A stretch of DNA of 64,000 nucleotides from Utricularia gibba (lineage: Eukaryota > Plantae > Magnoliophyta). Both the position numbers and the translations under genes were made by a program. The number at the start of each line of letters is the position of its first letter. Position 1 is the first letter of the stretch. Shown here one piece after another: positions 11,171-64,000 of this stretch. The notes under the pieces are model-generated. The model did not search any database. It was given only the letters and a program-made list of their open reading frames with translations, and was not told the origin of the DNA. The DNA is taken from NCBI GenBank assembly GCA_002189035.1, contig NEEC01000019.1, forward strand, positions 1 to 64,000, written 5' to 3'.

Positions 11171-11261
11171 ATATTTTATCCTCCTTCAGAGTTGGGATTG
11201 GCTTGCGACAATAGGCTTCCTTTTTGGTTCAATTCCCCAACTTCTGTTGTCAACTAGCTCT

Positions 11262-30609: not shown

Positions 30610-30619
30610 TTTATCAGCT

Positions 30620-34000: not shown

Positions 34001-34329
34001 ATCTAAATTTAAAGAGTATCCGGAAAAATTTTTGAATGTTGTTTTACTTTTGAAAAATAAAAAGTACAAATATAAATTATTTAAAGAAAATAGAAATAGA
34101 AATAATGTGTTTTGAAAAAATTACAGAAATTAATTGAAAACTATTTTTCAAATATGATAATATTCTATAAAAATTATTTTAGACTAGCAAAAATAGTAAT
34201 AAATAATAAATTTCATAGTGAGATAACCATACATAATTAAATAATAAAATTCGACATAATTAACTCATAAATTAAACTCAACTAAACACTCCTAGTATGA
34301 TTTTTCCAAAGTTAATCATGGTTCCTATC

Positions 34330-35480: not shown

Positions 35481-35549
35481 GGAAGCATTGATATCTATAA
35501 TTGACACAATTCCTCATCATTTTCTTCTTTTGTGGAGGATGATGATTGA

Positions 35550-36200
35550 TTCATCATGATTGCTCCCTTTAATTGAGGCCAAGAATTTGATTTAAATAGA
35601 GGGAAATAGAACTCTTGAGAGAGTCGCAAAAACAAGTGATCTGTAATACAAGAAAAAAGTGCATTACTTTGACACGAGAATGACACAAAGTGTATCAATT
35701 TCAGTACTCTTATGGTCCTACAAAATCTCATACTCATTAATGAAAAAGTGAATCACCATAAATGCAATCAGTTTAATTTCACATCCTAAAACTAGTTGCG
35801 GGTGAAGCTCCAAATGAAGCACCATCCAGCCTTGATGAATTGTTCATTATCCATCGCAGGCATGCCTCATCACTTTTGACTATTATAAAAATCTCTCGGT
35901 TTAAACTACTCTTAATCAAATTTATGTGATTTACCTTAGTTCGCCTTTGAGTTCACGCAAATTTTTGGTCATGTCTCTCTTTCTTTTGGGGCGGCTCCAT
36001 ATGATCCATATCATCCAGCCCATAGTTGTTGCATTCTCACCATTAGATTCTTCAAATTCTGAATTGTTCTATTGCCGACCACCATTACGGACAATACATT
36101 CAGGTGCATGCTCAACAATGGGGTCAAATAACTTTTGAAATAGTTTTGCAAACATTGGAGGTGTTTCCTTCAATTTTGCATTAAGAGCATTTTTCTACAT
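35550..36200 (-). pseudogene. Probable PIF/Harbinger ORF1 (Myb/SANT-like partner) remnant
   Basis: Lies upstream of the transposase on the same strand; KLKETPPMFAKLFQKLF and LHFVSFSCQSNALF resemble PIF ORF1 C-terminal regions; weak. Confidence 0.45.
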
Positions 36201-36309
36201 GAAAAAAAAACAATGTCATGTATCAAAAAATAAACAAGCAAATAAAACAAAACAAAAACCACAATAATAACTAGCATCCATTACAAATAAAAACCACCAT
36301 TAATTCTCA

Positions 36310-36900
36310 TCATTGAATGCAAGAAGAGGAGAGATTCTTGAAAAGTTGTGGAGTTTGGTATATACCATCTAACTCTTACCACCCTCAAACTAATGGGCAA
36401 CCAGAAGTTTATAATAGGGAGATCACGCAAATTTTAGAGAAGATTGTGAATTTCTTTCGGAAAGATTGGAGTTCAAAGTTGAATAACACCTTTTGGGCAG
36501 TTCGCACAGCCTTCAAAACCCCAATTGTTATGTCTCTCTTTCCATTTGTATATGGTAAGCATTGTTATTTGCCCATTGAATTAGAACTGTGGTCAGATGA
36601 GGAATTTAGAGACTGAACTTGGGGATCAAAGCCAATGGTTATTTGCGGAAGGTAAACCTTCCAAGCTTGATGAATTATGGCATGATGCCTACATGAATTC
36701 TAAGATCTTCAAGGAACACACAAAGCAATTCTGTGATTGCTAGATTTTGTGGAAGAATTTTGAGCCTAGCTAGAAGGTATTGTTGTTTCTATCAAAACTC
36801 AAATTCTGCCTAAGTTCACAGGTTGAAAACATTTCATGAGTTGATAGCCAATAAACTGGGTCACCCTATGGATGCTGTGATATTCATGGAAATTTCTCTA
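36310..36900 (+). pseudogene. Athila-type integrase remnant
   Basis: YHPQTNGQPEVYNREITQILEKIV...DWSSKL...WAVRTAFKTPI...YGKHCYLPIELE. Confidence 0.85.
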
Positions 36901-38204
36901 TAAGTCACTTTGCACTCAAGTCTTACCCTAATATTTATTCTAGGGTCCTGATTGGAATGTAACCAACATTCATTTTTTTGTTTTATTTGTGCAATTTTAT
37001 TTTGTTTCTCCTATTTCTCTTTGTGCATTTTACTTTCTACAAAGTTGCAATTTGTCAATTTCTCTATCTCCTACACACTTGTTGGACTCATTCAAAACTG
37101 TTTCTTCTCATCATATGGATTGCATGATGTTGTGTTTTATTTTGATGTTTGTATACTTCCGTTTTAGTAAAAATAGTGCATAAATACTTGAATTAGGAGG
37201 GGACATAGGTCGATGCACATGGACTCCAAGTTTGCATGAATGAAACTTGAATTGGCCCAATTTCTCTTTAATCTAATGTTAATGTGGGCCTATTGTTCCT
37301 TGAAGTCTATAAGGGTCCAGTACATTTGGGTTAGGCTACATGAACTAACAGTTTGCTAGATATTACTAGAACAGGGTTAAAAGCAGAATTACATGTCTAT
37401 TGCAGCCCATAAATAGGATATTGACAACTCTAAATATCAGGATATGAGATAGATTGGCATGATCAGATTGCAAGTGTAAAAGGAAAAAAATCAAAAAGCA
37501 AAAGAGGTGATATTGAAGGCCTCCCATGACATGCAACATGAGCAGGTCGGATTGAGTGGAGAGAGGAGAGAGAATTCTGTCACTGGAAGCTATTTTCTTG
37601 CAAGTTTGAACAAGTTTTTAAGGAAAAAGATGAAGGAGGAATAGTTCAAGTGTGATACTGGAACTAATCTCCAACTCCCAAAACCTAGCAATGACAGACA
37701 GCTTTCAGAGTGAACCTTGGGAACCATTCTGTTTGAGAAGAACAAGAGGCACACATGAGAATTCAACTGGAGCAGGAGAAACTTTTTATTTTTTGCCCAA
37801 ACTTTTTTTCTACATTTTTTTCGCAAACTTGGTAGCTGTTGCATTTCCTATTTTTTAATGTTTAACTTGTTTGAATGTCTTCATCAACCTAGCATGCTTT
37901 CTTCATTGTTTCCTTTGTTGTTTAAAACTTGAATTGGAACAGTAACTTGAGAATGGATTAGTCTTTTCTATCATGGTTAACTTTTAGATTAAGTGAAATG
38001 CTTTCTTTTAATTTCAAGAGAATATTGATTTATGCATTTTATTTTCTATATTTTAGTTTAGAAGCCAATTGAAGAATTTCTATAATTCAAATGGAGGAGA
38101 AACCTATGCCCAAACAAAAAATCCTTGTATAGTCCCACTTAAACCTTCAAATAACATCTAAAAAATATTTGCTCTCGATGGATCGATCTATACTTACTAC
38201 TGCT

Positions 38205-39563
38205 TGATAACACACAAATTTTCATGCTTTGTGATATTAAAATCATAACTTTTTAAACATGTGTTAGTTACTTATTTTATATTTTTAAGTATTTTTATAT
38301 GATATAGGGAATGTATGATTTTGTGTACAAATGGGCTAGATCTTTGAATTTAGCCCATTCTATGTTAGTAACGTGTTTTGAGTGTAGCAACAACCTCCAA
38401 AATGCAAGGGAGACAATATGGATTTCGTACAAGCATCAAGTTGCAGATAAAAAGGCAGCATGAAATGAGTGCACTATCACGACGGCAGCCTGCAAGTTAG
38501 GTGCAGGAGCAATAGTTTTGTTAGAGATAGCACTTCCCTTGGAAAATGAGAGGGGAGAAGAAATTTTCTAGAAGAGAGAGAATTGAAAAAGCGGAGAGAG
38601 CTTGGAGAGTTTCAGTAGTGACACAAAGGCGGCTCCTCCAACAACACAAACATCGATCATAAGAGGAGAAGAAGGAGATTCTCGCGAAGAAGACTCCCCA
38701 TCCTCAAGAACACTCCCAAGACCCAATCAGCACTACTGTTCCACGCTATGAACAGTAGCAGACAAAAAACATGACACTTTATTTAGTTTGCTGAAACTTT
38801 AATTTCATTGGTGGTTTGTTTGACAATGAAATCTTACTTTATTTTCCATACATAAGTAGCTATACCTTAGGGATGTCTTAAGGTGTAGGATGGTGATATG
38901 GGGCAAGGGTTAATAATGCAATTGATCTTTGTTTCTTAGTTCTTGTTTCTATCATTTCATGGGTAGACTTAAGGGGGGGAAACAAGTAGCTTCACAACTC
39001 AGATGTCTGATTTAGAGGTAGACCAAAAAATCAAAGTGGGAGTAGTAGGTATTAGTCCATGGTAGAACCATTAGAACTAAGTAGACCTAGTTCTATATAC
39101 TGTGCATGCGGGTAGACCCAATTGTGACGTTGGTAATGATATTGGGGACTATATGAGCCGAAAACATGATGAATGACCTGAGTAGACTCAGGTTGTTTGG
39201 AGTAATGAGCATAGGAATAATGTAAATTAAGTTAGTAACCTTAGCATCACGTCACCTACATTACCTTAAAGCATCTTAGTATTACTCAATACTCAGAATC
39301 AGCACTTGTTATTTTCTGCTCTGCATTTTGACCTTACTTCATGAGTTTGTCTATTAGTGTTAGTTCGACCTTATACTAAAAATGAAATCATTTTGTGATT
39401 CTACATAGGCTAGAACACATAGCAAGCATTCGATCCTTGGGATCGACCTCGAAAACCACTATGCATGTTTTCCAAACTTGTATTTTGTGAATAGTAGGGT
39501 TTATAAATTTATTTGATATGAAATTTGATTTTATTACAACGGTATCAAATTTTCCATTTATTA
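38205..39563 (+). mobile_element. Athila-type solo LTR nested in another LTR, TSD CTGCT/CTACT
   Basis: TGATAACAC...CCATTTATTA; flanks 38200-38204 and 39564-39568 differ by one transition; same family as 60582-61998. Confidence 0.8.
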
Positions 39564-39678
39564 CTACTACATTATTTTCTTTGTTTATGAGATGTAACAT
39601 ATTTTTTAATTTATAAATATTTTTTGATGGTGAGCACCTTTAGGTCTTGAAATCTTTAGAATTTTCCATTCGTTAAAA

Positions 39679-41350
39679 TGATGTCATTGACGAGGAGCTA
39701 GGTGCTTTTCAGTTGTCTATTATTAATGCATTTGTGTTCTTTTGTAGGTGAAACTCTTTTCCTACTTAACCCCAAGATTGAGAAATCACATAAGAGTAAA
39801 AGAAGCATGCAAAGAAGAAACAACATAAGCCAACCACAAAGATCAAACAAGGAGCTGCTATACACGAATCACTTGTGGATGCAAATGTTGTGGAGAAGTC
39901 TATGTAGGAATATGATAGCCCTAATTATTACTACCTTGAAATCTACATAAATTTTCTAGAGGAAGCTACTACATTTGTACTCCGACCAAGAATCATTTTT
40001 TTTTTATTTTCTACGGAAATAGGAATGACGATGCACACTAGCACTTGGATGGCTTTATTTCAATCAGTGTGGTAGTCAAACCGAAGGAATTGAGAGAGGA
40101 TAGTATGTTGTTACAAGTTTTCCAATTTAAATTTGAAGGAGATGCGAAGGATTGGTTCAATACTTTGGAATCAAGAAGCAGAGAGAGCTGGTAGAAATGA
40201 AGGAATTCTTGAACAAGTATTTTCAATTTACAAAGGTTACGGAGTTAAGGAGAAAAATTGTAGATATTTATCAGTTCATGGGAGACTCGTTGCACAAGTA
40301 TTGGGACAAGTTGAATAAATTACTTGCGACCTATCCTCATCACGGGTATGAGTTGTGAAATTCTTTTTGGAAGGTCTATTACTATCGATGAGAACATAGT
40401 TAGATGTTGCTACTGTAGGAAGCATGAGAACTCTGACTCCTACCCAAGCTTGGATGAAGATCAAGGAGATGATGGAACAGTCTCATCATTCTTATTCTAG
40501 AAAGAATGTCTATAGTTAAGTGAATTCTGTTGGAGAAAGCTCAATGTCATGTGGGATGATGAATCAATGCTTTGATAATGTGAAGAAGACGGACAAGAAA
40601 ATCAGCGAGCTACATGATATGATGAGAGAATTATGCATGGTGCAATCTAAGTTTCATCATGTGAGCTATGCTCTGTTCCATGACATAAAGCAGAAACCTT
40701 CTCGTTGACGTATGACAATGTGAGAGTCGATCCCATGGTGTATGCGGAAAATCAAGGAGGATGGCACCAAGCTTGGGACTACATTCCCAAACATCTGAAT
40801 TTGAGTAGGAGAATTGTGAATGCTTTGAATCAACATCTTCTATAGCAGAACCAGCCACACGAAGTCACCAAGTCTCAACAACAACTCGTACAATAGACTC
40901 AGTCATAGGGATAGACTAAGAGAAACATTCAGCAGAAGCATTTGCAACAAAGAACGTATCAGCCTCCTCATTAGTGGAGCGATCAAGTGAAACCAGGACC
41001 CTCTTAAGAGGAAACGTGCATTGAAAGAGAGGATAGCAAAAAGAAGAAAGAATCAATTCAAGGAGCGATCAAGCACATTTAAAAGCAAGTCGGACAATTG
41101 GAAACATGAGTTCAAGAACAAATTTGGAAAGGTGCCTTTTCAATCATCAGTGAATCCACAAGGAAATCTTTCAGCAATTGAGTTGAGAAGCAAGATGAAA
41201 TTGCCCAAAAGAGAAGTGATCCAGCCTCACTATCAACCTAGCAGTGAACTACTTTGAGAAATAAGCCAGAAAGAAAACCTAGCAAAAGATAGTGGTGGAG
41301 GGCAATCTGCACACCCACCCATAGAAGAAAAGATTGAGGTAAACGTTACT
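39679..41350 (+). pseudogene. Athila-type PBS and gag remnant
   Basis: tgatgtcattgacgagga at 39679-39696 resembles the Athila PBS tggcgccgttgccgggga; LEGDAKDWFNT; FLNKYF...ELRRKI...SLHKYWDKLNKLL..YPHHG; VNPQGNLSAIELRS. Confidence 0.8.
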
Positions 41351-42799
41351 CAGCCCCCATTCTGGGGAGGTTAAGTCACCTTTTAGTTCTCCATAGGTGC
41401 AATAGTGTCTCATTTAATAAGGGGATGAGGATCTTCTCCAAATGCTACTTTACTCTTTACTCCCTTTCATTTCCGTAGTCTTCGTCTTACCATAGGACCT
41501 TTGCACATCTCAACCATGGTGGCCGCCTCTTCCTCTGACTCTATCACCCCTCCTTTGGTCACCCTCGATCATACGCATGTCCTAGCATCTCCATTGCTCC
41601 TTGATTCACCGGCTAATGCGATGCCCCCTGCTTGACATTTGCCTAGATCTGAGGCTAAGCCCTTTACCGATAACCCTAGGTCCTCTTTGAGTGAGACTTT
41701 GCTCATCGTGAGATTGAGGCTGATATTTTGTAGTTGCTACTGGCCCTCTGGGTGAAGCACCTTCATACCCTTGCCTCCACCACCCTCTTGACCATCTCGG
41801 ATGCCCCACAACCCTCTGCTTCAAGTGTCGCACTCAGGCACAAGCAAACTCCCTCACGAAAAGCTCCTCCTATTATAGATCTGGACGAACCAGTAGATTT
41901 TTCCCTTACCCAGGCTACACCTTCCCATTCTGCTTCAAGTGTCCCACATGTTGCATTGCTATTACTCGTGGCCACCACCTTTGCTGCCCCACCTCCATTG
42001 GTAGACCGCTTGACTCCTAAGCCTCCCTTGACTCTTGACTATATTTATGCTGATTTCCTCAAGGATGAGTCGCCTCTTAACTTGTTGGAGAGAGTTACCT
42101 CCAAGATGATGATAGGAACAACTCAAGATGTTGCACAAGTGGACAACCAGAGCTTCGTCCTACCTAGAGCAATATCAATAAGGTCATGACCACTAGGGAA
42201 TATAAACTCGATTGTAGACAACAGCAGAAGAAGATATGGCTACTAAACAATGGGAAGAGCAAATGGAAGCAATCAAAAAGCCGTAGAGAAGGAATCAAAG
42301 CCAACTACACCACCCAATGAGGAAACGAGGGAAGAGTCCACCAAGATAAGCAAAGGGATACAAGAAAAAGACAACTACGGAACAATGGAGTAAGCACCAA
42401 CAAAACAACAGAAAAGCACAGGAAACATCATGAGCTAAACAACATAAGGGAGAGAAATGTAAGAAGAAGAAAACTAACCCCTTGTTGAATCTACCCTATT
42501 GGCAGACACGGACATCACCATGGTAGATTAGGAGGATTGCTCAAGGAGAAGGCCATGCCTTTTTCAACAAGGTAGACATTGATATCTTCATAGAACCTTG
42601 GATTCAGCAGCAAAGCTCACAAGGAGAAGCTGGACATAATTTTGGAGAAAGATTGGAATCACCTTAGGTGTTAGTGAGGAATCACCCTAAAACTCATATT
42701 AGATGGTACATCATTCCTCAAAAGTTTTCTGAATCATCTCTCTATCTGTGCCGAACTATGTTATGAATCTGTCACGACACTTGCATATGATGTGGCTGA

Positions 42800-43560
42800 A
42801 ACTGTTTTTGAGCAGGGAATAATTTCATTTATACAATTTGAAAAGTGGTTTGCACATTCGTTGGCTAATTGAAATAGAGCTATAGGTTTTGTTTCTATGG
42901 AAGTGTTGAATTTCTACTGCTTTTCAAACATCCATCTTCGATTTCCCTAGTATTGACTATTTTGATGAGCACGAAGTTTATGAACAGTTAACTGAGCAGT
43001 GTGAGGTAGTTTTCTAACAAAAAGAAACTAAGGCTAGTCTTATAGTCAACCATGTGTGGAGGATCATTCACGTTTTAGTTTCTACTTCTTTCTTTCTACA
43101 CCAACACACTTTCAACTCCCTATTTAAAAATGAAACCTTTATATTGTGGAGTTTGATGATCAAAGAGCCCTTAAATGTGGGAGCATTACTTGCTGATTCA
43201 ATGAAGAAAGAAGTAGGAAACATAAACCATGTGCTAACTTTGTGATTCGACAATTGTTTTCATATTTGGCTTTTAAGGAATTTGGCTCTGATGTGATGGA
43301 AAATGTCTACTTGTATATGAGACCACCTCCGATTCCTATTGACTTGTATTTCTTGACGAATATTGCAATGATTCGACTTGACAATGGCAAGATCATCTTT
43401 TTAATGAGCATAGGTAATGAGAAAATCAGGGAGCAGGCCCTGCCCAATGCTCTGGAACACTCTTCATCTATAGGAGCTAGAAAGATGATTGAGAAAAATG
43501 GAGATTGCTGCATTAAACTTTCAAGATGTATTTAGAGATATTGTTGGATTTGCAGAAGAA
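42800..43560 (+). pseudogene. Athila extra (env-like/ORF2) remnant
   Basis: RIIHVLVST...ETFILWSLMIKEPLNVGALLADSM...IRQLFSYL is typical of the Athila 3' ORF. Confidence 0.6.
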
Positions 43561-44049
43561 TGCAGGTCCTACTCCCCCTCCTAATCCTTGATTCAACTCT
43601 TACCTAAATTTTTGTGTAGATATGTGTTTTCTTTGTCATTTGTGTATCATTTTCTCTCCGTTTCCATTGCACAATATGTGTTTGCTTTATGTCTATTTGT
43701 TTCTCATGGAGTTCTGTTGAGCATGTTTAGGAATTTCGAATAATGTTAGAAGTGTAAAATGTCCACCCTCTTTATTCTGTCAAGACTCAACATGTTTAGT
43801 TCTTATCTACTTAAGACTTATATGAGGGTAGCCAAATTTTAAGAGAAATGCTTACATGCAGCCTACATTTTTCTTTGTTTGCACTAGCATTTACTTTTGA
43901 ATAGTAATGTAGTGGTCTGCCAATCTATGGCTGTGTGGGTTGAACTCAGTTAGATATATAGACAGTGGTTGATGCACAAGGAAACAATTATAGATAGAAT
44001 AAATATCACAAAAGCCTGCTAAACTCCAAAACTCGAGCTGTAATATAAA

Positions 44050-45200
44050 AAAACGAGAGCTAGAGGTAGCGACTTAAACACCATGAATATAGTACCCCAA
44101 ACATAGTGGTTTGACGAACCAGTCTAGGAGAAATAAGGATGAACGAAAGTGAGGGGAAAGCGACAAGGCTGTAATGGAGAAGTTCTGAGCCTTCTATATT
44201 TTTGTAGTACCTCTCTATGCATCATTTTCATCTTTTAGCCATACCTTGTCAATAAGTCTTCAGTGGCTTGCTAGGGTAAAACTTATAGTGTCACAGCTTG
44301 TATGCCACTACTTGCTAGGATCGAGTTAGTGTAGATGCAGATTAGATTTTTGAATATATATAGTATGCGAGTAACCTCTATTATCTATGGTTGAGTGAAA
44401 TTGTTCTAACATGTGCTTGCTACATCAATAGCATGAGTTGGAAAACATTCTTAGTCTTCGGTATTTTCATGTGTCTTTATGGATGTTTTGTATGGTTCAA
44501 TGTTATTTTGCATGCCTAATTGTTTTTTTTTTTGTGTATTTAGTTGGTAGGAATGTGTTTATTGTTAAAATAGGCTTAATTGACAACAATTGAGCCGTAA
44601 ACTCTCATATTTCCCTCTAATCTGTGTTTAAGTCTTAACATGGTAAGAGTTAATACTAGAAGCTTACTTCCCGCATTGAAAAGTTAGAAGGGGAAAAAAT
44701 TGAGAAAAAGTGGCTTTTAGCCAAAAGCAGTCGACTTCTCAAAAGTTAGAACGGTGGTTCTCTAGTGACACCTCTAACTAGCTTTCAGATCTACTCACAT
44801 AGACTAGTTTTTTCTCTCAAACTCTTCAAGTCAGCTAATCTACAAATGATTGCAATCAATTAACACTTTATTTTCACTTTTTGTAATACTGTTTCCCATC
44901 TTGAACATGTTTTTCAGTATTTTCTATGTTTCTCTTGCAATTTTGGTGCTTAGTTGTGAACTGGAAACTTCCTACAAACGTTATTTTTGTTTATCCAGTC
45001 ATTCTTACTTCAATTCTTTGATTCTTAGTTTTTAAGTTTAATATAGCAACTTTTCTCACACTCTTTTCCATAACTCATTGGTGTGATAAAGTTGGATTTA
45101 AACCTAAGGATTCCTTTGAAAATTCAACAGCCAAATCTTGGGGAAAACCCTAACAGAATCACTTCCCTCATGTGCTTTACGGATATCTTTTAACCTTGCA
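44050..45200 (+). mobile_element. Athila-type 3' non-coding region and partial 3' LTR
   Basis: Homologous to 60-1500 (e.g. acaacaattgagccgtaaactc vs gcaacaattgagcagaaaactc). Confidence 0.65.
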
Positions 45201-45262
45201 ATGCACTCATGCTATTTACTATTATTTCATGTCTGATAAATCTTCTACATTGAAGAAAAGAG

Positions 45263-48200
45263 TATTAGTGTATGTGTTCTAGAGACAATCAAACTCATTG
45301 CCAAATCTTATCTTTGGATATTTACTTTGAATTGTGATCAAATTTATATCATTAATAAAATCCTCTACTTGATCTATGTGCTATAGAAATTATTATGAGA
45401 TCCTAATGTGAGATTCTTCAAGCATTTATGTTCAACTTAAAAACTCCCTGGCTAGAGTGCTTGTGAAATGAGAATATCACAAATACGGATAAGCTAGCAC
45501 ACATTGAGTTCTATAAACTGTTTAGGCAATAGTTCTCACAATTGATGTAATGAGATTACTAGAACCTATGTGTGGGTGTCGATTAGAGAATCGATTCACT
45601 GGATAACTCATCTTCGAGATGCTACTATGGAAAGCTAACCAAGTGTCAGTAGCAAGATCTCGAATATGACAGCCATGCAAGTAAGCTTAGACTTGAAGTC
45701 AACAAAGTTATCTTGATCTTAAGCTCACATTTTCGCTCATTACTAATGAGAGCCTAACCATGGCTTGCCTAGTATGGATGAGTAGGGATGTGACTCCTTA
45801 AAGTTGGAGATAGTTGATTGATCAATAAAGGATTCATCACTCAAGTTAGCGATGAGATCATATCTCAAGTAATTACATCAAAGTCTAATGGTAAGTACTG
45901 GGCCCATGGTAATGACACTTGAATTGTTTGAGTAGGTCATTGAGTGTTAGTGCTTGAATGCAATTATAAGTTCGATACATCAGCAAGACACACCCATGTT
46001 TTGGTATCGAATGAGATATAAGTATGATGAAAGCTGTTCATTGCATGGTGGCTGGTCATGGAAAGGCTCAATCAGTTCACCTGATTATTCTTTAATCTTG
46101 GGGATCATGATATGTTGCTAGACATCACTCATGATCGATAATGATGGATTTGATTAATTAAGAGGTAATTAATAAATCCATTATTACGGCCTTGATTGAG
46201 GAAGCCTATAGGGTCACACATAATAGTGGACTCACTCATCGATATAAAATAGAATGACACAATTACATGAGATGTAATTGGTAAAGTGGATAAATCAAAT
46301 AGAGAGTTATTTTGAGATTAATATTGATTAAACTCAAAATAAAAGATCTCATATAGATATGATTTGATATGTCACAAAATATCTATCAAAAGATTTAGAT
46401 ATTGAGATCTGCTCGAAGGTCTTTTGTGTTCTCTGAGACTTATCCACAAGAAGACATTTTTCTCTATTAGCACCTGAGAAATTCGACCAGTATTCAAGAG
46501 CCTTGAGAAGGTTATCGACAGAGTGCTCCACGTGTGGATACGATAGAGGCCGTCTGCTATTGGCGGTTGGTGAACAACGGAGTCATGTGAAAGGTACTTT
46601 GAACATCCTTCGTCTGATATATACCGTATTCCAAGATCTGTGATTGGGGTTTCTCAAAATTTTTAAAATTCCGTTGTTTTTTAGATATATACCGTAATTT
46701 GAACGACTCGAGAATTCCCATTTATCAGCTATAAAGAAAGCCCCTTATCATCCTCCTTGCATTTATTGCACACTATTCAAGCATTTATGTCAAGTTTTCA
46801 CTTTGCTATTTCTATTCGGACACTCAGTCTTAGGTCAGTATCCAAACACTTGGGCCTATGCTGCTGTTTGAGTGCTCACTCTCAGCCTTGTGTGTCCACA
46901 GAGTTAACTATGCTATCTTCAAGCCAATTCCTAGATACCAGGTAAACTAGAGTCTTTGAGCTCTCTACATATACTAGGCTCGTCACTATTTTCCATGGAC
47001 ACTTAGGACTTTTTTCCTCTTCCTCAACTACTAAGTCTCTCATGCATGGGTTCTTGCTATGTCATTTGTGATTACTGAACCTTCTTCGAGTTTAACATGC
47101 ACTTTCTATTCGAGTTTTCAATAAAAGAAAATATATTTACAGAGAGTCCATGCATAAGTCTTCTACACATGAAGAAAGCTTTCTAACAGACAATTCATAC
47201 TTAGATATTCTTTATAAGAAAGTACCTTCTTGAGCAACTCTCATTTGTGTTTTCTATACATCATCAATCATAAAATAAAAGCAAGATCCAGTTCTATCAC
47301 ATACTAGTATTCCTAGCTCGAAAGAGAAGCCTAGTTTGCTCTCACGCTAAAAGCATTCAGTAAAAAAGTGTTCTTCATCTCTAGTTTGTGTTACTCTTTC
47401 CTTATCCTAGAAGCTCTACTAGGAAAAATCTCATTTGATGTGTTTGGGAGTTATTGGGGAACTCCTTCCTTTGTTGCCAAAAGAAAAATATCCTCTTACA
47501 CTTTTTTGTCTAACGTGTAAAGTTGTGTAAGACTTCTTCTTTTTTACTTACAGTCAGCTATCTTGTCTCCTCCCATTCACATTTTTCTTTTGCCACTAGT
47601 CATTAAATTTGAATGGTTTTTTTCCACTTTTTCCTCATGCTCCCTTGGTCTTAATAGATTATATGTCATATTGATTTTGCAAATAAATTGTTATTGAGTT
47701 GATCCTAGCCTTAATGCAAAAAACTTATGAGAGTGGGCCATAAATTAAATCAATAATTTACTGTATTTTTACAAAAAGATAATGCAAACCATACCAAAAT
47801 CATATTTCAGCATAATTTGACTACTAGTGACTCTAGTTTCTTAACATAAAATCATAATGAATGTGTATTGTCATATTATGCTATGACAACATTAAATTTA
47901 TCCCTGAATTCTGATTGAGACTAGCAAAATTCCAACTTCAAACTAAAACATGGTGATACAAATAACTAGTTTTCTTTTAAGATGCATGAAGAAATGGAGT
48001 GCTTGGATATGAAACAATTTACCATTCAAGTACGTATAGTCATTGTTCTCATGAGGAATGATTTCAAGAACTAAAAACATTTAACAATTATAATTTATGT
48101 ATGATGGTATTGAGCAAACTCTCTAGCCTCCTTATTTCAATTTGATATCTTCTACTCTTACGAATTGATTAATCTCATCTCAAGCACTCGTCACTATGCC

Positions 48201-50070
48201 TTCACACTCTCTTTTACTCTGTGTGGTTTTTTTTTAAAGCAATAGGTCTCATCGTAATTCTTTTAGTGATGCTTTTTTATCCGATTTCTTTTTGTCTATT
48301 TTTTTGTTGGTAATCAATAGCCTAAATACAAACAAAAATATGCCAATTCACATTAATCTGAATTGCACTGCCTAGATTCTAGTAATCATGCTTGCTCTCA
48401 GGAAAAAAAAATAAAAAAAAATGGTCATTCATTGTTCTCACAAGGTTTCAAACAAAGTTCATGCATCCTAGATATTATTTAAGAGAAAATTTTATTATAG
48501 GCAATAAGCTTATATCCAATTTTCATTTTTTGTGTCAATTTTTTTTGTTTCATTAAAAGCATTAAACATATAAAAACCATTTCAATTTTAATTGATACCT
48601 AAAAAAATAGTTTTTTATTTCATTGAATCACTAGTACGATCGATTTCATTAAAACCATTAGTGTAGATTTTCAATTAAACATATCAAAATCATTACTAAA
48701 GCCATGAAATATTTCAAAATGCTCCTTTTTCATCGAAGATTTCCAAATCCCTCCAAAAAACTTAAGAATTATTTCCATGTGTATTCCTTTTGGATTTCAA
48801 CAACTGGATATGCGATTGGAAAAGGGAATTGAAAATATCACACTTTTGCTTAAAAAATTGGATAAGATGTGGGAGTTTTTAAATTAAAATGAGAACAATA
48901 TTGCATAAATTAAGAATTGAAATATGTTCCTTCGACTCGTTGCTATCATCCTTCCTTTGTGTTGTGATCCTCTTTCCTCTCCTCTACAGTTACTCCATTC
49001 CATGCTCATTTTCCTTACATTTGTCTAAAATCTACAATTTTCAGCATCTCACTTTCTAGGTCGTTCGGGATTCAGGTATGGAATGATTTTAATCTACAAT
49101 AGTATGCTTAATTACTTAGAAAATTGATCGATGACACTAAACTATTACATAATTACATCACTTTGGGATTGTTAATATCTTATCATACGTTTTCGGAATA
49201 AAACTTGCTTATATATCAATTAATCATCGTTGTTGCTGTGTAATATTCGTTGTTTTCATATTTTTATTTTGTAGCATCATCAATGGTTTGTTATGTTATT
49301 GTGAAAATGACTTGTTTGGCTATTTTTTTATCATTTTTAATTAAATATGTTGTCGTTTTATATACTATTTAGCTAGGAATTAATGTTGTTTAAATATGCA
49401 TGAAGTCGCCATGCATTGAAATCGGAGAACCTATTATATATAAAATAGAGTAGGTTAAACAGATAGAGGAAGAGTTGGATAGTTTTAGTGATTCCGTACT
49501 AAAACTTCATTTTAAATCCAACTCTAAAGATTGTAACATGGAAGGGGAGGCATACTTTACAAAATCATAGGACATGTACACTAAAGCAATTAAGTGAAGA
49601 TCATATCATAGCATGTGGTCCATGCAATGTGAATAAGTCAATCTGATTGGGAAAAACCTTAGTAAAAAAGATTAGAAAAATTCCGAATATAAAAACAGGA
49701 AAATTCAAAAACAAATTTAGGAGAATCTTTGAACATTTAGAACTAGAAAAGTGCATTTAACATCATTCATGGACATGATGTTGAACAATTTTGCATATTG
49801 TCCAGGTACGTAGCAGAGGTGAAATGAGCTAATCTGGAGAAAGCCTGTTTTATTTGAAGTGTGAATGTTTACCTGGTGGTAAAAAAACATTTAGTAAGAT
49901 ATGTGGTTGCCTTCAAGCTTGTAGAAAGACTTTTCTAAATTTCTGTAGACAATTGGTAGGGGTAAATCGGTATTTGTCAGTTGTAGTTGAGATTGATGCA
50001 AAAAACAACATTTTCTATTGCTTGGGATGGGATTGAAGCGGAAAATGATGGAAATTGGACATGGTTCATT
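45263..50070 (+). repeat. Segmental duplication, copy B: Angela-like LTR (45263-46720), copia remnant and Mutator remnant
   Basis: Near-identical to 29152-33959; different upstream and downstream flanks. Confidence 0.97.
49390..50070 (+). pseudogene. Mutator transposase remnant (duplicate), cut at WTWFI
   Basis: Same sequence as 33280-33959 but lacks the RLLAKDM continuation. Confidence 0.85.
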
Positions 50071-50140
50071 TTCTCTTCCGCTTCCTCGTCTGTGTTATGT
50101 GCCTCTTCCTCTTCTGTTTGTGATCTCGTACTTGATGTAG

Positions 50141-51122
50141 AATTCGCCTCCGTGGACAAGGAGATTTCCAAAAACGTGATCAAAGCAGCATTCCTGGAAA
50201 CAGAAAGGGAGTTTCTTTCTCTTGTGAAGCAGCAATGGATGTGCACGCCACAGATTGCTTCTGCGGGTACGTGCTGCTTGGTTGGGGTCATATGCAATGG
50301 GCTTCTGTATATCGCCAATGCGGGAGACTCGAGAGTGGTTACTGGCAGGGGAAAGAGGACCGGCAGAGGGATGGAGGCGATTCAGCTGTCGGAAGAACAT
50401 AACGTCAACATTGAATCAGTCAGAAATGAGCTCCAGCGGTTGAACCCCAATGACCCGCAGATTGTGGTTCAAAAGCACCAAGTTTGGCGTGTAAAGGGCA
50501 TCATACAGGTAGGCGCATAGCTTTGATTCCTGTGTTCGGGTCTTTCATTGCAGCTGTTGAACAGAAAACCATTCGCTCTTTCACAAGGTGACAAGATCCA
50601 TCGGAGATGCTTATCTCAAGAGCTCCGAGTTCAACAGGGAGCCTCTATTGCCGAAATTCAGAATATCAGAGCCCTTCAGTTACCCGATTCTCAGTCCAGA
50701 GCCATGGATTACGGTGCAGGAGCTGAATCCCAATGATAAGTTTCTCATATTCGCATCAGATGGCTTGTGGGAGCATCTCAGTAACCAAGAAGCTGTTGAG
50801 ATCGTCAAGAAGAATCCCCGTTCTGTAAGCCAGAGCGACAGGTGAACCAACTTCAATAACAATAAATGATCTGATCTAAAATATTGTCATGCAGGGCATT
50901 GCAAGAAAACTAGTTGACGCAGCCCTCTGCATAGCGGCGAAGAAGCGTGAGATACTGTACTCCGACTTGAAGGATATTGGACCTGGTGTAAGGAGATACT
51001 TCCATGATGATATCACAGTCGTGGTTGTCTTTCTAGATCAATCCTCCAGCACGAGTTGTCCCAGAGTCTCGGTAAGAGGAGGTGGCTTTCTGGGTGAGGT
51101 CTTGATTCGGGATTCCATGTAA
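50141..51122 (+). CDS. PP2C.D: Clade-D protein phosphatase 2C (PP2C38-like), exons 2-4 only: 50141-50508, 50588-50824, 50895-51122; exon 1 not found in window
   Basis: Spliced frame is open: [33 protein letters not shown]|[54 protein letters not shown] introns at 50509-50587 and 50825-50894 sit at the conserved clade-D positions; phase-1 acceptor AG at 50139-50140 follows a pyrimidine tract. Confidence 0.93.
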
Positions 51123-51836
51123 ATGTGCAGCAGAGTTTTAATCGTCAGAGTGCTTGAGTGCTTGAAATACATGGATAGGAGAATGGGGGAAATTCAAGTA
51201 ATTGTAATGATTACAGACCTCCTAAAAACCCAGAATTCCGCAGAATCTCTGCAGCTTTACAATACTACAGTTTCCCCTCGTGAGATCATGAGCGAATATA
51301 GCAACTCCCTCTGAGTCAAATGTGCCTGTGACCCCCAAAACCACATCAGAAATGCTAAAGACTGAAGAACGCAACGCGCGAATGTGTGGAGTAGATCACT
51401 TTTAAGACATACAAGACGCATTTTCCAAACGATTTACGCGAAAATTGCACCGTTTGGAGCTTTATTTATACCAAAATAAATTTAAGACCCAGGAAAACAC
51501 ATGAAGAAGCAGAACCGGAAAACCGAAAACAATTGAACACCATGTGTAGGAAAAAGTGAGTATAAGAAAATGTCAGATGGACAACGAAGCATTCCACGCT
51601 AAGTAGAGATGAATCAAGCAAGTGAATTTTTGTAATCAAGTATTGTCCATTAGGACATGCAACTCACGTGACGTTTGAAAACATTTATCATGAACTCACT
51701 AAGCACAGAAGGGTCAAACCGCATCCTATCCACGAAAAAACCAGATGTAAAAACTAGGCACTGGAAATGTGTGAGGAACCTCACTGCCAGCAAGAAATCT
51801 ATATGTTATGCAAAGAGGCCAAATGTCAAGAATTAA

Positions 51837-52860
51837 GGGCTCATTTGGTATGATGTATAGTATTAGAGTGCTTTTAAAAACTAAGGAAAATAAAACCTTC
51901 AAATGGTTGGGTTTGATTAGTTTGGTATGATAGTTTATTTTATAAAGGATAACCAAATGTGTGTTTGGTTGGTTATATTAAAATATTAGTTTTAATGATA
52001 TTTTACTATTATACTTTTATTAATTGACATAATTACTTTCTTCCAAATCCCATCATAAAGCTTCTATTCCTAGCGAGAAAATTGCTATTCCCTCTACCCA
52101 AACTAGTGCCATTGAAATTCTCCCAAAACACTATTCAAGTTGAATTTTGTAGCAATAAAATTGCTCGAGTTCTTTACGATTCAAGTCCCAACGCTCCTAG
52201 TGAGTTATTGCTTGTGATTTCATTTCAATGTTATGTGGGTAATTAAAGCATGAAATGTTTTTTTTATTTTCTAACCATATTCTTTATTTTAATGGGCTTT
52301 TGTTATAGGATGGATGAGTTTTTAGAATTTGTGATGTTCTTTGTTCTCCAACAAACTATTTTTTCACGGTTCATTTGGTTGTGCTTATTACTTGCTCTTT
52401 TGCTAGAGCAAGATGAACAAAATCAGAAACGTAAAAAACGAAAGTACTCCATGATTGGTAAAATGAATATGCAATCTTGACATCTTCAATATCTTATTGG
52501 TTATAGTGATTTTGCTTGTTTGGATAATTTGCAAATGATTAGAAATGACTTCGGTAGATTGTGTAGTTTGTTAGGAAATGCTGGTGATTTAATGAATTCA
52601 AAGCATGTCTCTATAGCTAATAAAGTATCTATTTTTTTTTTTGGGTTTTGTTAGATTCATTTTTTTATTTTAATGTTCAACCCTTCCATATCCCATTTTC
52701 TGGTTATCACATAAAACAAATGCATTCACTAGGAGGAAGACAGCTTTTAGTGCCACGGTTCGTGATTTAAATGGTTTCCACAATTTTGGTTTTTCTATTT
52801 CGTGCGCTGATCAAAAGTAGCCTCATTAATGCCTTTTTACATCAGAGTGTTTGATGTCAT
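51837..52860 (+). mobile_element. PIF/Harbinger element left end and transposase N-terminal remnant
   Basis: TAA followed by TIR-like GGGCTCATTTGG at 51837; about 52480-52640 LQYLIGYSDFACLDNLQMIRNDFGRLCSLL...SKHVSIANKVSIFF matches the PIF transposase N-terminus. Confidence 0.75.
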
Positions 52861-53092
52861 TAACCAAGTACTCTATGAGTTTACTTGCTTTTCATACGGA
52901 ACACCTCTCTAATGTAATACACTTCCATGAAATTCAACACTTGAAAACTAAAAGCCTGCATTTTATAAACATGCAAATTAGCTACCTTTAAACATCTTGG
53001 AAGAGCTAGGGGAGAGTTTTAGTAGAACCCTTTGAAATGATCAATGGAGAAAAAATGATCATCTTTAAATTGTTATCTTAAAAAGTTATATA

Positions 53093-54760
53093 GTATAATT
53101 TTTACATTCTAATATCTTTTATCATTTATAATTATATTTTATATTTCTATAATATAATTTTTACATTCTGATATCTTTTATTATTTGTAATTATATTTTA
53201 TACTTCTATAATATAGTTTTTATATTCTAATATCTTTTATCATTTGTAATTATATTTTAATACTTCTATAATATAATTTTTGCATTCTAATATTTTTTAT
53301 CATTTGTAATTATATTTTATACTTCTATAATATAATTTTTACATTCTAATATCTTTTATCATTTATAATTATATTTTATACTTCTATAATAGAGTTTTTC
53401 ACATTCTAATATCTTTTATCATTTATAATTATAGTTTATACTTCATTGTTATAGTTTTTACATTCTGATATCTGATAAGTGATTTTGTGTCGTTCCAAAA
53501 CATGCTCTGCCATTACTCTTGAGAGTTATTTTTACTTATCTTAGACTTCACTTTCTCATTATTTTCAATTGATTTTATATCTTTCACACTACTTTTATTT
53601 TTTTGGAGAGAAAGTGTATTTTATGGATTTTTAGGGTACTTTTGGATCAATTTGAGGAGAAATCAAGACCCACCAAATTATGGACTTGATGGGCCACAAA
53701 TCTCAGCCAAAGACTTGGTCAAACGATGAAGATTTAGTCCAAAATCATGAATAAGATAGAGATATGAAGATCTTCTAAGATTTGGATAAAAGATTTCGAT
53801 AAAAGATCTTATCCAAGCCCATCGAATAAGCTCAATACGAATACTTGGATCTACTCTCCTATAAATACCCCACCCTCTCAACTATTAGAGACGTCCTTTA
53901 ACCACTTTTCCTTTGTATTTTCCTATTTCGTGTCTATTTTCATGTTAAAGTTAAGTCTGCGCATGTAGGCACTTGCGGCTGAGGATCTACGGTGAAGCTT
54001 TACTTGCGCAAGTCCTGCGCGTGTGACTATTTTACTATGTTTTTCGACATTTAAATTGAGGTTTGATTCTGTTTTTCGTAACGTTTTCTTTACCAACGTG
54101 CTCTTTAGTATCACATAACCCGAAGGGAGTGTGAGAGAATCAAAGGTTAGCCTCAAGCATCTAAGGAGAAGGCTTCAATTGGACATCGTTGGTAAGGCAC
54201 ATTCTGTCTAATCTATCTACGAGGTGCGAGGTGTAAGGGTTAGATTTGGATATGGGGAAAACATAGGTTATCACAAGAGGTGAAATGGCTCTAATGGCGT
54301 GGTTGATTCCATAATCCCACAAAATAAGGAATGGTGCTATAACGGTTATCGAGTAACACTACTTTAGAATAACACTCCCAGAGCTTGCGCAAGCAGGTCA
54401 GTTTTCAAGGTTTACACACAAGTTTGGGCGAGTTTTAAGCAAGGTGGATCTTAGATACAATGTCACTTTTCTTGTTGTTTTTAAATCCAAATCTTTCTTT
54501 TGTTTTCAGTCTTTTTGAGTGTTTCTTTGAAAAGAAAATTCCAATAACGATTCCCTGTGGATACGATCTTATTTTATTACTTCGATGGTTTATGTGTGCA
54601 CTTGCAGATTCACCATCAATATCTTTTATCATTTGTAATTATATTTTATATTTCTATAATACAATTTTTACATTCTAATATCTTTTATCATTTGTAATTA
54701 TATTTTATACTTCTAGAATATAGTCTTTACATTCTAATATCTTTTATCATTTGTAATCAT
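53093..54760. repeat. 59-bp AT-rich tandem array (about 6.5 + 2.5 copies) split by a solo LTR
   Basis: Unit atataatttttacattctaatatcttttatcatttgtaattatattttatacttctata at 53093-53472 and 54619-54760. Confidence 0.92.
53473..54618 (+). mobile_element. Solo LTR, TSD ATATC
   Basis: TGATAAGTG...CACCATCA; ATATC at 53468-53472 and 54619-54623. Confidence 0.9.
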
Positions 54761-54770
54761 ATTTATTTTT

Positions 54771-55430
54771 TGTTACTAAAAAATGCATATAATATAATTT
54801 TTATCACAAAAAAGCATGGAACAATTATGCCAAGTAGCAACCCCAATTTTGCCTTCCTACACAAAGCGATGGTGGTGGATGCCCCAAGATGCTACCTTGT
54901 AGTTGTGTTTCTATCGAGTAGTGGTAACTTAGGCTTTAGTGAGGCCCACTTCATGTACAAGATAAATAGGTTGAACATTTGTATGTAGAGACAGTTTTTG
55001 GTAATTAATTTGGCTTGTTCACGTCTTACACGATAGGGAACAAAAAGAAGACTGCATTCAGGCCTCTGACCGCAGAAAATTACATGTGCAATTGACCGGT
55101 GACACAAGCTCAAGGGGCAGCATCGTATGAGGCTCGTAACAATTTGGTATCAGAGCCAGTGACCCTGTTGGACCCAAAACCCATTCCTATGTAAGAAATG
55201 CTAAAAATGTTAGCTGAATCTATAGCATATTTGCAGCATAGTGTTCAACACGTCTCCTGGAGCATGGAACACCTGGATCCATCAGGTCCCTTGACACTAC
55301 TGGGAGAACAACCTCAAGTTAGTTCTTTCCCAGATCCATGCTCAGCGGAGGAGCATGCGATTGACAGCCATGCCAATGTTTCTCAAAAAGTACTTAAAAC
55401 ATGGATGTGCCTAAATTCGATGGAACTTGA
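54771..55430 (+). mobile_element. Chromovirus-like 5' end: 371-bp LTR, Met PBS and gag start
   Basis: TGTTAC...GTAACA termini (54771-55141); tggtatcagagcc at 55145-55157; MDVPKFDGT at about 55402-55428. Confidence 0.75.
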
Positions 55431-55439: not shown

Positions 55440-58400
55440 CATCAAGTGCATTGAACTAGTGCCGAAAAGTGTGAAGTACCTTAAGTAGCTCTATCTGTCA
55501 AAGCCAAAACTGAATGAAAAAGGTAAGGTGAAGTTGAGTGAAAATTGCTCATCCCTTTTGACTTGGAAGCTACCTGAAAAACGCAAAGACCCTGGAATCT
55601 TTTTATTCCTTGAAAAATTGATGACTTGAACATCAGGAGATCAATGACTCACCTGGGAGCCTCCATAAACATGTTGTCATTTTCTGTGCATGAGACTCTT
55701 AGGTTAGGAACTCTACAAGCCTCAAGAGTGCAAATTGAGCTTGTTGATCGAAGAGTAATTTCTCCTAAAGGCTTGGTTGAAGACGTCCTGGTGAAGATTG
55801 AAAAATTGGTGTTTCCAACAGACTTCTATGTGGTGAATATGCCTCCTAGAAATTCAAAGGATACAACCATCATCCTTGGAAGGCCATTTTTGAGCATTTC
55901 CAATGCAATAATTAATGTGAAGATGGGCACAATTGAATTATCCTTTGATGAAGAAAAGATTACGGTGGACATGAAGGAAGAGAACAATTATACCAGTGAT
56001 TTTGAGAGTGTATGCTCAATGGATGTGATGGATGAATTGGTTGACGAGCATTTTTAGAAGGCTATACAAGAGAAGGAAGAAGAGAATGAAGAATCACTTT
56101 TTGGTAGGGTGGAAGCTGAAAAAAGGTCAGAACAAGTGAATGCTATGCAGATCAAGACCCTGGAAGAGAGGACATCTGAGTTGAAGCCACTGCTCACACA
56201 CCTAAAGTGCACATTCTTGAATGAAGAAATGAACACTTCTGTTATCATCTCTAATAGTCTTAGCTTAGACCAAGAGTTGCAATTGCTCGAGGTGCTGATC
56301 AGAAACAAGAAAGCGATTGACTGGACCCTTACAAATATTGAAGGCATCTCTCCTTGTGTATGTATGCATAAGATTCTATTAGAAGATGGAGCCAAACTTG
56401 AATGCCAGCCATAAAGACGCCTCAACCCAAACATGATGGAAGTTGTAAAAAAAGAAATTTTCAAGCTTCATAATGTACACATTATCTATTCATTCCATCA
56501 CAGAAAACGACTGGGTGAGTCCAATCCATGTGATGCCCAAGCAGACTAGTATGATAGTGGTGGAGAATGATAAGGGAGATCTGGTACTACAAAGAATCCA
56601 AAATAGGTGGCGCATGTGCATAGACTATAGGAAATCAAATGAAGTGATTAAAAAGAATCATTACCCTTTACCTTTCATTGATCAAATGCTTAGAAAATTA
56701 ACAGGAAAATCTTTTTATTTCTTTTTAGATGGTTATTCTAGATATAACCAAGTTGCAATTTCAGGTAAAGATCAAGACAAAACAACTTTTACCTGCCTAT
56801 TTGGGACTTAGGCCTATAAAAGGATGCCCTTTGGATTGTGCAATGCCCTTGCTACCTTCCATAGGTGCATGACCAGTATCTTCTTAAATTTTGGTGAGGA
56901 TTTTATTGAATTTTTTATGGACGATTTCACAGTGTATGGAAATGATTATAAGTCATATTTAGGTCATTTTGATCAAGTATTGCGAAAATCTGTTAAAAAA
57001 AATCTTGTTCTTAATTTTGAAAAATGCCATTTTATGGTTGATCATGGAATTGTGCTTGGTCATGTTATTTCTAGGAAAGATATTGAGGTAGACAAAAAAA
57101 AATTAAAATTATGACTGAATTACCGTAACTCATTGATGTGAAGGGTATGAGATCATTTTTGGGGCATGTTGGTTTTTACATAAGATTTATTCAGAATTTT
57201 TCTAAGATTCCCTTACCTCTTAGTAGGCTTTTGCACAATGATGTGGAATTTATTTTTGATGATTGATGCATGTCGTTTCCACAACAAATTTTAATACTTT
57301 TAAAACTCGTAAAACACAAAAGCATAGTACGGGTGTCGGACACAGGGAATTGTTTTTAAGTGAAATGTGAGGTACCCCGAATACAACTGTCACGATTTGT
57401 AAACAGTTTTGAAGGTAAAAGGTGCGAGAAACGTTGATGATGAAGCTTGAGTAAGGGAATGAGAGGGGTTTTGAGAAAACAACTAAAATGAACGTAAGCG
57501 ATGAACCTTAAATAAAGTAAATGTTCTTGGGTTTGGAATCCTGTCCAGCTATGTTCGTTGCGTCTTCACTCTTCTCTGGTCCTCTCGAGTACTCGGTTAT
57601 AGGAGTAAGGAATTGCCTACCCTCCCTTACACTCTCTTGCAAGAAGGCACGGGAATAGCCCGAAGTTGTTCCTCCTTGGACAAACGTGAGAATAAGAGGT
57701 CCTGCCAGCGTACCCTCACAGCCGAATTGCGCACGTGTGCCCGAGTGTTACCAATGACCCAATGAGTCCAGATACGAGTTGGTGCTTTCCACCTTGCTCC
57801 TATCCATTGATCCTGAAGTACGGCCACAGACAAAACGTTGTCTTCCTCCTGCCAAAAGGGCTCGAGTTGGTACTTTCCACCTTGCTCCTCTCCAAAATCC
57901 GCGGGTAGTGATCAGCTAACCATGAACCTTGAACAAGGGGACTGTTACAGAAAGACTGCAACATAGTCACGCCAAGACATACGAAACCCATTCGGATTCA
58001 GAGAAAATATGAAGATAAGCTAACGATACATAGATCTAGGGGTGTTTCAACCCAGAAATGGAAGCTTCTAGTCGCGAACGGTCATACAAACTAAAGGAAA
58101 CGCAAACAAGGTTCTAGAGAGAAGTTAGAGGAAAAATCCTCTAGAGAGAGAAACAAAAGGGAAAACTAAACTGAAGAAAAAATTAAACTTGTCTGAACAG
58201 AACTGAACTTCATTGAGAGTCTGAGCTTTCGTGTCCCTATGATTCTACTGAACTTGGGATGACTTGCAAGCAACGTCTGACACTGGTACGCTAATGATGC
58301 TGCCTGTCAGAGACTCTCGTGTTCCGCACGTCAAGGCTCATGATTAGGCGTCTGTAGTCTTCCGGAAATCAAGGGAATGTCACCTCGGGAAGATCCAATT

Positions 58401-60000
58401 TGTCGCCATCTGATGCCCTCTTTCTCTCACTTCCTACCACGTGTGCGCCTGTAGAAAAACTCAATTAAAACTAGTAAAATTAATAGATAAAATACAAGAT
58501 TTAGGATAATTACCCTAAACTAGATAAAAACCCAAATCTCACATTATAGACTCCTAATTAGACACTTCTAATCACATTTAAACATAAAAACAACCTAAGA
58601 AATAATAAGAAAATGACACTTAACAATGATTCATACAAAAATGCTTTTAATTGCTTGAAAAAAGCTACGACCATTGCTCCTGTGATGCAACCACCAGACC
58701 AAACATATGATTTTGAAATTATGGGTGATGCTAGTAGTCATGCTGTACGAGCAATTTTAGGACAGAAAAGTGAAGGGAGACATCATGTGATTTCTTATGC
58801 CTCTAAAACTTTGGATGAAGCCCAAAAAAATTATACTATCACCGAGAGGGAATTTTTGGCTGTGATATTTGCTTTGGAAAAATTTCATTCCTATATTTTA
58901 GGCAAAGTGGTGGTCTACACAGACCATTTTGCAGTAAAACACTTGATGGAGAAGAAGGAGACGAAACCACAGTTGATCAAATGGATTCTCCTTGTTGAGG
59001 AGTTTGATATTGAAATTAAAGAAAACCCTAGAAGGGAGAATATGGTCACGGACCATTTCAGCATGATGTAAGGGATAAAGAATGACAGTTCTATCACTGA
59101 AACATTTCCGAATGAACAATTATTCCTCATGGTTTGAAAAATGATTGTTCTATCTTAGATAAAGAAGCTATTGATTACATCTCAAAGTGGATTGAAGCCA
59201 TTCCTAAAAGGATAGATGATACAAAGACAATGATTAATTTTCTGCATAACAACATTTTTGTGCGGTACGGGACTCCTAAGGCACTAATAAGTGATAGCGG
59301 AACACACTTTTATAATCAGGCCTTGAGGAGCATTTTGAAGCAGTTCAATGTTTGGTACAAGCCATCAACAGCATACCATCTACAAACAAATGGCCAAACG
59401 AAAGTTTCAAATAGGGAGATTAAATAGATTCTCAAAAAGGTAGTCAACCCGAATAGGAAGGATTGGAGCATGAGATTGAGAGATGCTTCGTGGGCGATAA
59501 AGACAGCATACAAGACACCAATTGGGACCTCTCCATTCAGGTTAGTCTATGGAAAACCTTGCAGGTTACCAGTTACGTTAGAGCACATGGCCTGGTGGGC
59601 AGCGAAGAGGCTAAATCTCGATGATAGCCTCAGTGCAAGCCAAAGAAAATTACAGCTCTCAGAACTGGAAGAGCTAAGAAATGATGCCTACAAGTGCTCG
59701 AGCATTTGTCATGACAAGCATATTTCCAGAAAATTCTTAGAAGTTGGTCAAAAAGTTTTGCTATTTCAATCAAGACTGAAGTTGCATCCAGGGAAACTTA
59801 AATCTCGTTGGATTGGACCGTTTCAAGTGAAAGAAGTTTTCCCAAACGGAACTGTGGAGATTTAGGATGGAGAAATTAATGCAAGTTTTATTATGAATGG
59901 ACATAGATTGAAGATTTTTTATGAAAATCTTCAAAACAGGGTGGCTAGGAAAGTTGAAGTTCTTGTCCTAAGGGACACTAACAATGTAGAACTTACTGGA
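55440..60000 (+). pseudogene. Athila-type pol (protease, RT, RNase H, integrase), degenerate, interrupted by a solo LTR
   Basis: KLPEKRKDPG; LGASIN..., GLVEDVLVK, ILGRPFL; WVSPIHV...WRMCIDYR; FMDDFTVYG; MGDASSHAV...YTITEREFLAV; YHLQTNGQ...[16 protein letters not shown]. Confidence 0.92.
57264..58625 (-). mobile_element. Solo LTR, TSD ATGAT
   Basis: Minus-strand TGTTAAGTG...GCATCA; ATGAT at 57259-57263 and 58626-58630; removing it restores FDDSYKNAFNCLK. Confidence 0.9.
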
Positions 60001-63185: not shown

Positions 63186-64000
63186 TATTGGGTTTCTCGT
63201 AGACATCGTATGTCTCAAAAGCAGCGGAATTTTAAAATTCTGGAATACAGTATACATCAGACGAAGAGATGTTCAAAATACCTTTCAGATGACTGCGTTG
63301 TTCACCAACCGCCAATAGCAGACGGCCTCTATGGTATCCACACGTGGAGCACTCCATCGATAACCTTCTCAAGTCTCTTGAATGCTGGTCGAATTTCTCA
63401 TGTGCTAGTAGAGAAAAACGCCTCCTTGTGGATTAGTCTTAGAGAGCACGAAGACCTTGGAGCAGATCTCAAGATCTAAATCTTTTTTATAGATATTTTT
63501 TGACATATCAAATCATATCTATATGAGATATTTTATTTTGAGTTTAATCAATATTAATCTCAAAATAATTCTCTATTTAATTTATCCACTTTACCAATTA
63601 TATCTCATGTAATTGTGTCATTCTATTTTATATCGATGAGTGACTCCACTATTGTGTGTGACCCTATAGGTTTCCTCAATCAAGGCCGTAATAATGGATT
63701 TATTAATTAATTCTTAATTAATCAAATCCATCATTATCGATCATAAGTGATGTCTAGCAACATATCATGATCCCCAAGATTAAAGAATAATCAGGTGAAC
63801 TGATTGAGCCTTTCCATGACCAGCCACCATGCAATGAACAGCTTTCATCATACTTATATCTCATTCGATACCAGAACATGGGTGTGTGTCTTTCTGATGT
63901 ATTGAACTTATAATTACATTCAAGAACTAACACTCAATGACCTACTCAAACAATTCGAGCGTCATTACCCTGGGCCCAAGACTTACTGTTAGGCTTTGAT
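63186..64000 (-). mobile_element. Angela-like LTR, 3' part (runs off window end)
   Basis: Minus strand ends AAACCCAATA; reverse-complement homologue of about 29760-30600. Confidence 0.85.

Follow-up and report, generated by a model that had tools for sequence, protein, structure and literature searches.

What is probably a relic of a clade-D-type PP2C gene, very young and truncated at its 5' end, lies at the end of a duplicated block in the 64-kb stretch of the Utricularia gibba genome analyzed here (referred to as the window). The chimeric reading frame that runs into this relic from an upstream ATG is best read as an accidental by-product of the junction between the two. In the original prediction, the junction was taken for a Mutator insertion, but it actually marks the end of a 4.8-kb duplicated block, composed of an LTR and its flank, and the PP2C sequence is joined directly to that end.

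The window consists of plant DNA with 37% GC and is dense with transposons, copia reverse-transcriptase fragments among them. Two of these copia-type fragments form an inverted pair (1725-2415 on the plus strand and 12988-13724 on the minus strand) with 85% identity, and the minus copy matches RVT_2 at E=1e-52. A Ty3/gypsy chromovirus occupies about 24005-28871, with 340-nt LTRs that are 97.35% identical and a tRNA-Met primer-binding site (TGGTATCAGAGC) after the 5' LTR; its protease, RNase H, integrase, and chromodomain open reading frames (ORFs) are largely open. A second gypsy-like element is found at 55626-59865. In addition, an AT-rich tandem repeat with a unit of 59 to 60 nt forms two arrays, at 53052-53473 and 54559-54823, that lie 1.2 kb apart.

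The surviving part of the PP2C gene is encoded on the plus strand and begins within intron 1. The last 70 nt of this intron (50071 to 50140, phase 1) are 74% pyrimidine and end in an AG acceptor at 50139-50140. Exon 2 (50141 to 50508) includes the motif GDSR, exon 3 (50588 to 50824) carries RSIGD and SDGLWE, and exon 4 (50895 to 51122) carries HDDIT and ends with a stop codon at 51120-51122. Introns 2 (50509 to 50587, 79 nt) and 3 (50825 to 50894, 70 nt) are both bounded by GT..AG, and neither a stop nor a frameshift interrupts the 276 codons of the three exons, in agreement with the earlier description of exons 2 to 4 as intact. When the exons were searched one by one, exons 2 and 3 matched the Pfam PP2C profile (PF00481) at 34.7 and 62.2 bits, above the curated cut-off of 20.3. 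The match on these exons spans profile positions 71 to 228 of 255, with positions 1 to 70 missing. Two motifs of the full PP2C set, SDGLWE and HDDIT, are present, but RxxMED and DGHGG are absent. A search of the PDB with exon 2 gave no match at E<=0.001. About 1.1 kb past the stop codon begins a Harbinger/PIF-like N-terminal fragment, recognized by eye at 52250-52650; if this assignment is right, the unique PP2C island would span only about 2 kb.

A word search with the region 49996-50508 returned 226 plant PP2C matches, the best of which were P0001 (73%) and P0009 (72%; "protein phosphatase 2C 38" of Phtheirospermum), in a collection that excludes U. gibba's own sequences and leaves proteins of about 380 amino acids outside its length range, so that a near-identical full-length product would be missed. 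The best named matches are annotated as "PP2C 38" or "PP2C 28" and share 60 to 73% identity with the query. PP2C38 is PP2C.D3, encoded by At3g12620 (PMC6016943). Judged by the annotation of its matches, the clade-D (PP2C.D) label that had been given to this sequence appears reasonable. The position of the first intron is conserved as well, as ORFs called from single exons in other plants start where exon 2 of the relic does.

Conservation was measured against 119, 11, and 13 homologues for exons 2, 3, and 4, respectively. At columns that are at least 95% conserved, the relic keeps 39 of 41 residues in exon 2, 38 of 39 in exon 3, and 22 of 28 in exon 4. In exon 2, T replaces L in RVVLGR and N replaces H in LHPDD, and exon 3 has a single departure. 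The six in exon 4 (50895-51119), which include REMRY to REILY and RRHFHDD to RRYFHDD, hint at relaxed or altered constraint on the C terminus before truncation. Overall, the relic is 71 to 74% identical to P0001, P0009, and P0097, while these three are 77 to 87% identical among themselves. Because exons 2 to 4 are both conserved and undamaged, the gene appears to have been under selection until recently. The pattern fits a lineage on which purifying selection, if perhaps somewhat relaxed, acted through almost its entire history; it would be compatible with a very recent truncation and equally with a gene that still works. Synteny was approached through the best match, P0001, which lies on L001 (Logan SRR31865537). 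This locus proved too distant: its exons share 68% DNA identity with the relic, no intron can be aligned, and the only 288 nt available upstream contain no similar upstream sequence.

As had been claimed previously, an exon 1 with DGHGG is not found beside the relic. A six-frame scan of the 64-kb window detected no DGH-type motif, and GDSR, RSIGD, SDGLW, and DDIT occur only at the relic. Similarly, tblastn with seven DGHGG-carrying homologues gave nothing outside 50140-51086 better than E=1.7. Within the window, exon 1 with RxxMED and DGHGG is therefore absent from the 50 kb upstream and the 13 kb downstream of the relic on both strands. In P0009, DGHGG is located about 22 residues ahead of the point that matches the start of exon 2 in the window, indicating that the missing exon 1 is the one that carries this motif.

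One explanation for this absence is that the gene is intact but has a giant intron 1. Exon 1 would then lie more than 50 kb upstream, the transposons and the duplicated block would sit inside the intron, and splicing to the acceptor at 50140 would still work. Indeed, intron 1 retains its acceptor, its pyrimidine tract, and a plausible branch site, the remaining exons are intact and largely conserved, and the window ends 50 kb upstream. However, the window holds no exon-1-like sequence, and introns above 50 kb are very rare in angiosperms. Further, the block beside the acceptor ends in the middle of a copied sequence, which argues that DNA was lost at the joint. We consider a giant intron unlikely.

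Positions 45265-50070 match positions 29154-33959 as direct copies with 99.56% identity over 4807 nt, and the match stops exactly at 50070. The upstream copy (copy A, 29152 to 33959, plus strand) consists of an LTR (about 29152-30600, starting with TGTTAGTG) and the 3.4 kb that follow it, including Mutator-like debris at 33392-34000 whose frame runs past 33959. The downstream copy (copy A', 45263 to 50070, plus strand) consists of a hybrid LTR, with a purine-rich, PPT-like tract before it, and the same 3.4 kb, cut off at 50070. Past 33959, copy A continues in the same transposase-like frame, whereas past 50070 copy A' turns into the pyrimidine tract of PP2C intron 1. The boundary at 50070/50071 is thus a novel joint, a rearrangement breakpoint at which the end of the duplicated block meets the intron tail.

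The two LTR copies in A and A' have the same orientation and lie 16.1 kb apart. The window contains four copies that all begin sharply at TGTT[AG]GTG (TATTAGTG in A'), and the sequences to their left are unrelated, which identifies the repeat as an LTR. Purine-rich tracts precede A' and the copy at 22044, as expected of a 3' LTR. Members of the same LTR family that are 82 to 95% identical are found in the opposite orientation at 11252-12262, 21207-22044, and 63241-64000 (all on the minus strand), the last of which runs off the window. The 11.3 kb between the two direct copies (33960-45262) is a mosaic of decayed elements. It includes a gag fragment detected with Pfam at 40137-40355. By eye only, a piece that resembles an integrase (36317-36613) and, on the minus strand, a Harbinger-like DDE piece (34851-35060) were also recognized.

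Copies A and A' differ at 22 sites, of which 20 fall in the first ~810 nt (29153-29963, within the LTR) and only 2 in the last 3996 nt. This two-part mismatch pattern fits the signature of a crossover inside the LTR combined with a very recent copy; gene conversion could also produce such unevenness. With only 2 differences in the last 4 kb, the event appears to be very recent, and commonly assumed plant substitution rates, which are uncalibrated for this species, suggest an age of tens of thousands of years. The end of the duplication at the junction and the near-identity of its last 4 kb support what the original prediction had offered as a fallback, namely, that the locus is simply a young pseudogene. 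We also considered whether one LTR retrotransposon, with LTRs of 4.8 kb, had inserted into the intron. This candidate was rejected, as the block does not have TG..CA ends at 50070, no target-site duplication is present, and the mismatches divide sharply into two parts.

The same near-identity is what a repeat-induced misjoin would leave behind. In such an artefact, the LTR would have misled the assembler into a second copy of the flank, which was then joined to the PP2C locus, and the last 4 kb of the copies would differ at as few sites as observed here. However, a second, unrelated misjoin would be needed exactly at 50070, and A' is distinguished in its left part by differences of its own and by a native left flank. 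We regard an assembly artefact as distinctly improbable.

The truncation could have arisen as follows. Two LTR copies in the same orientation would once have lain 16.1 kb apart upstream of the PP2C gene, and unequal or ectopic homologous recombination between them would have re-copied the LTR tail along with the following 3.4 kb. The left part of the resulting hybrid LTR would correspond to the diverged downstream LTR, and its right part, together with the 3.4 kb, would be a fresh copy of the upstream one. There are two possible routes to this outcome: unequal recombination and a subsequent deletion that reached into PP2C intron 1, or repair of a single break that copied from the upstream LTR and then joined the other broken end. 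Both would leave a new copy that stops at 50070, where the final 70 nt of the intron follow. Under either route, the DNA between the downstream LTR and 50071 would have been lost, which probably included the promoter, exon 1 with RxxMED and DGHGG, and most of intron 1. Exons 2 to 4 would look perfect because almost no time has passed since then, and the start of any transcript would have to lie in the LTR or flanking debris.

The DNA immediately upstream of the joint (49503 to 50070, plus strand) reads like a decayed Mutator-like (MULE) transposase in several frames. For a 79-amino-acid piece from copy A that contains the same 25 codons as the start of the chimeric frame, the nearest clusters in the ESM-Atlas belong to the MULE family PF10551 (score 0.91), as do all ten of the best, and we treat this as a lead only. 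Pfam gave no match to any of the debris pieces; likewise, the word search with the Mutator-like piece was blank, and a full HMMER scan produced only one low-complexity false match. The Mutator/MULE label given earlier therefore has look-alikes on its side but no match from Pfam, word search, or HMMER, and is plausible but unproven. The piece itself is old debris carried in the duplicated block, also present at 33392-34000, and is not the element that caused the truncation.

The ATG at 49996-49998 lies in a frame that is open from 49987 to 50520, with the preceding stop at 49984-49986. From this ATG, the frame crosses 50070/50071 and the 70-nt pyrimidine-rich intron tail into exon 2. Its first 25 codons (49996 to 50070, plus strand), which are found again at 33885-33959, translate as MQKTTFSIAWDGIEAENDGNWTWFI and are followed by 23 codons over 50071-50139 and then by exon 2. 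A chimeric product of 325 amino acids is obtained by codon count (171+79+75), that is, by arithmetic on exons 2 to 4 with their 5' extension. Sequence reading and codon count thus reproduce the ATG frame, its 25 codons, the intron tail, the two downstream introns, and the product length as originally predicted. The ATG was also correctly described as out of frame with the upstream transposase: the transposase-like piece at 49833-50033 lies in a different, overlapping frame, confirming that the frameshift is real.

An open frame of this length is common in the window and within chance. At 9% of frame positions in the window, the frame is open for at least 153 nt upstream, and at 4% an in-frame ATG is found at least 144 nt upstream. 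The 25 codons owe their lack of stops to descent from a coding frame. As the pyrimidine tract is almost stop-free by composition, only a 1-in-3 frame match is left to explain.

Could the chimera nevertheless be expressed? Transcription from the hybrid LTR or from the debris might yield an RNA that is translated from the ATG at 49996 into a catalytically dead PP2C.D fragment that serves as a decoy for SAUR proteins or substrates. The frame is open, the downstream splice sites are intact, and the LTR at 45263 has the same direction as the gene. However, the ATG has a poor context, with T at -3 and C at +4, and the nearest plausible promoter on the same strand is the hybrid LTR, 3.4 kb upstream. 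An LTR-started leader of this length would put many AUGs ahead of the ATG. With an intact acceptor at 50140, splicing from a cryptic donor anywhere upstream would bypass the ATG altogether. The fused N terminus occurs in none of the 226 plant PP2C matches returned by the word search with 49996-50508, from whose length range full-length proteins of about 380 amino acids are excluded. Four matches that cover 80 to 89% of the query (P0002, P0058, P0091, and P0119) were examined as instances of the same fusion and rejected, as they represent intron read-through in single-exon ORF calls from other plants. A functional fusion of transposon and gene would be marked by a transcript, a protein, or conservation of the fusion; the protein search provided no such sign, and nothing similar is found in the 288 nt available upstream of the exons at L001, the closest related locus. 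Finally, the joint is too young for selection to have acted on it.

The expected properties of the product point in the same direction. In established PP2C structures, the region that corresponds to the first ~70 of the 255 profile positions contains the Arg that binds phosphate, two Asp residues that bind metal, and strands from both central sheets. With these positions missing from a beta-sandwich domain, loss of activity and poor folding would be expected, and it is doubtful that the product would keep its C-terminal fold, as the original prediction had assumed. Its proposal that a transposon-supplied start makes a decoy or dominant negative also fares badly, given the lack of the fused N terminus in the protein search and the poor ATG context. 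We consider an expressed chimera very improbable; most likely, the 325-amino-acid product is neither made nor folded. It is more improbable still that the hybrid LTR drives read-through into exons 2 to 4 and that the dead 325-amino-acid PP2C.D fragment titrates SAUR proteins or H+-ATPase tails, which, if true, would make it a newborn dominant-negative regulator of acid growth that arose from a single recombination event and perhaps still segregates.

As a truncated relic, the locus matters little for phosphatase biology, and it is best annotated as a truncated PP2C.D relic and not as a 325-amino-acid protein. It does provide a clean and datable example of the beheading of a gene by LTR recombination and deletion. 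Such beheading can leave a perfect-looking ORF that gene predictors may call. Should the intact allele still be segregating, this locus would amount to a natural knockout for one of the PP2C.D paralogues.

Several known systems offer points of comparison. As in Pack-MULE capture, a gene fragment that retains its introns is found beside Mutator-like sequence. Capture by a Pack-MULE or other transposon was nonetheless rejected: the PP2C part is not enclosed by terminal inverted repeats, the window contains no further copy of 50071-52500, and the Mutator-like bit is debris within a larger block. Like the clade-D PP2Cs, represented by Arabidopsis PP2C.D1 to PP2C.D9, the relic matches Pfam PP2C in exons 2 to 4, has "protein phosphatase 2C 38" proteins as its nearest named relatives, and has intron positions common to other plants. 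Unlike them, it lacks the exon 1 that carries RxxMED and DGHGG, and it sits on a long branch, with six departures at conserved columns of exon 4. The remaining comparison is with LTR-mediated unequal recombination, or break repair with copied filler DNA, in plants. Here, the lost segment is not visible at the locus, and we infer how much was deleted and in how many steps. The hallmarks of LTR-mediated truncation are otherwise shared, as the locus has two LTRs in direct orientation, one of which is a hybrid containing a crossover point, and its re-copied flank is joined abruptly to unrelated host DNA.
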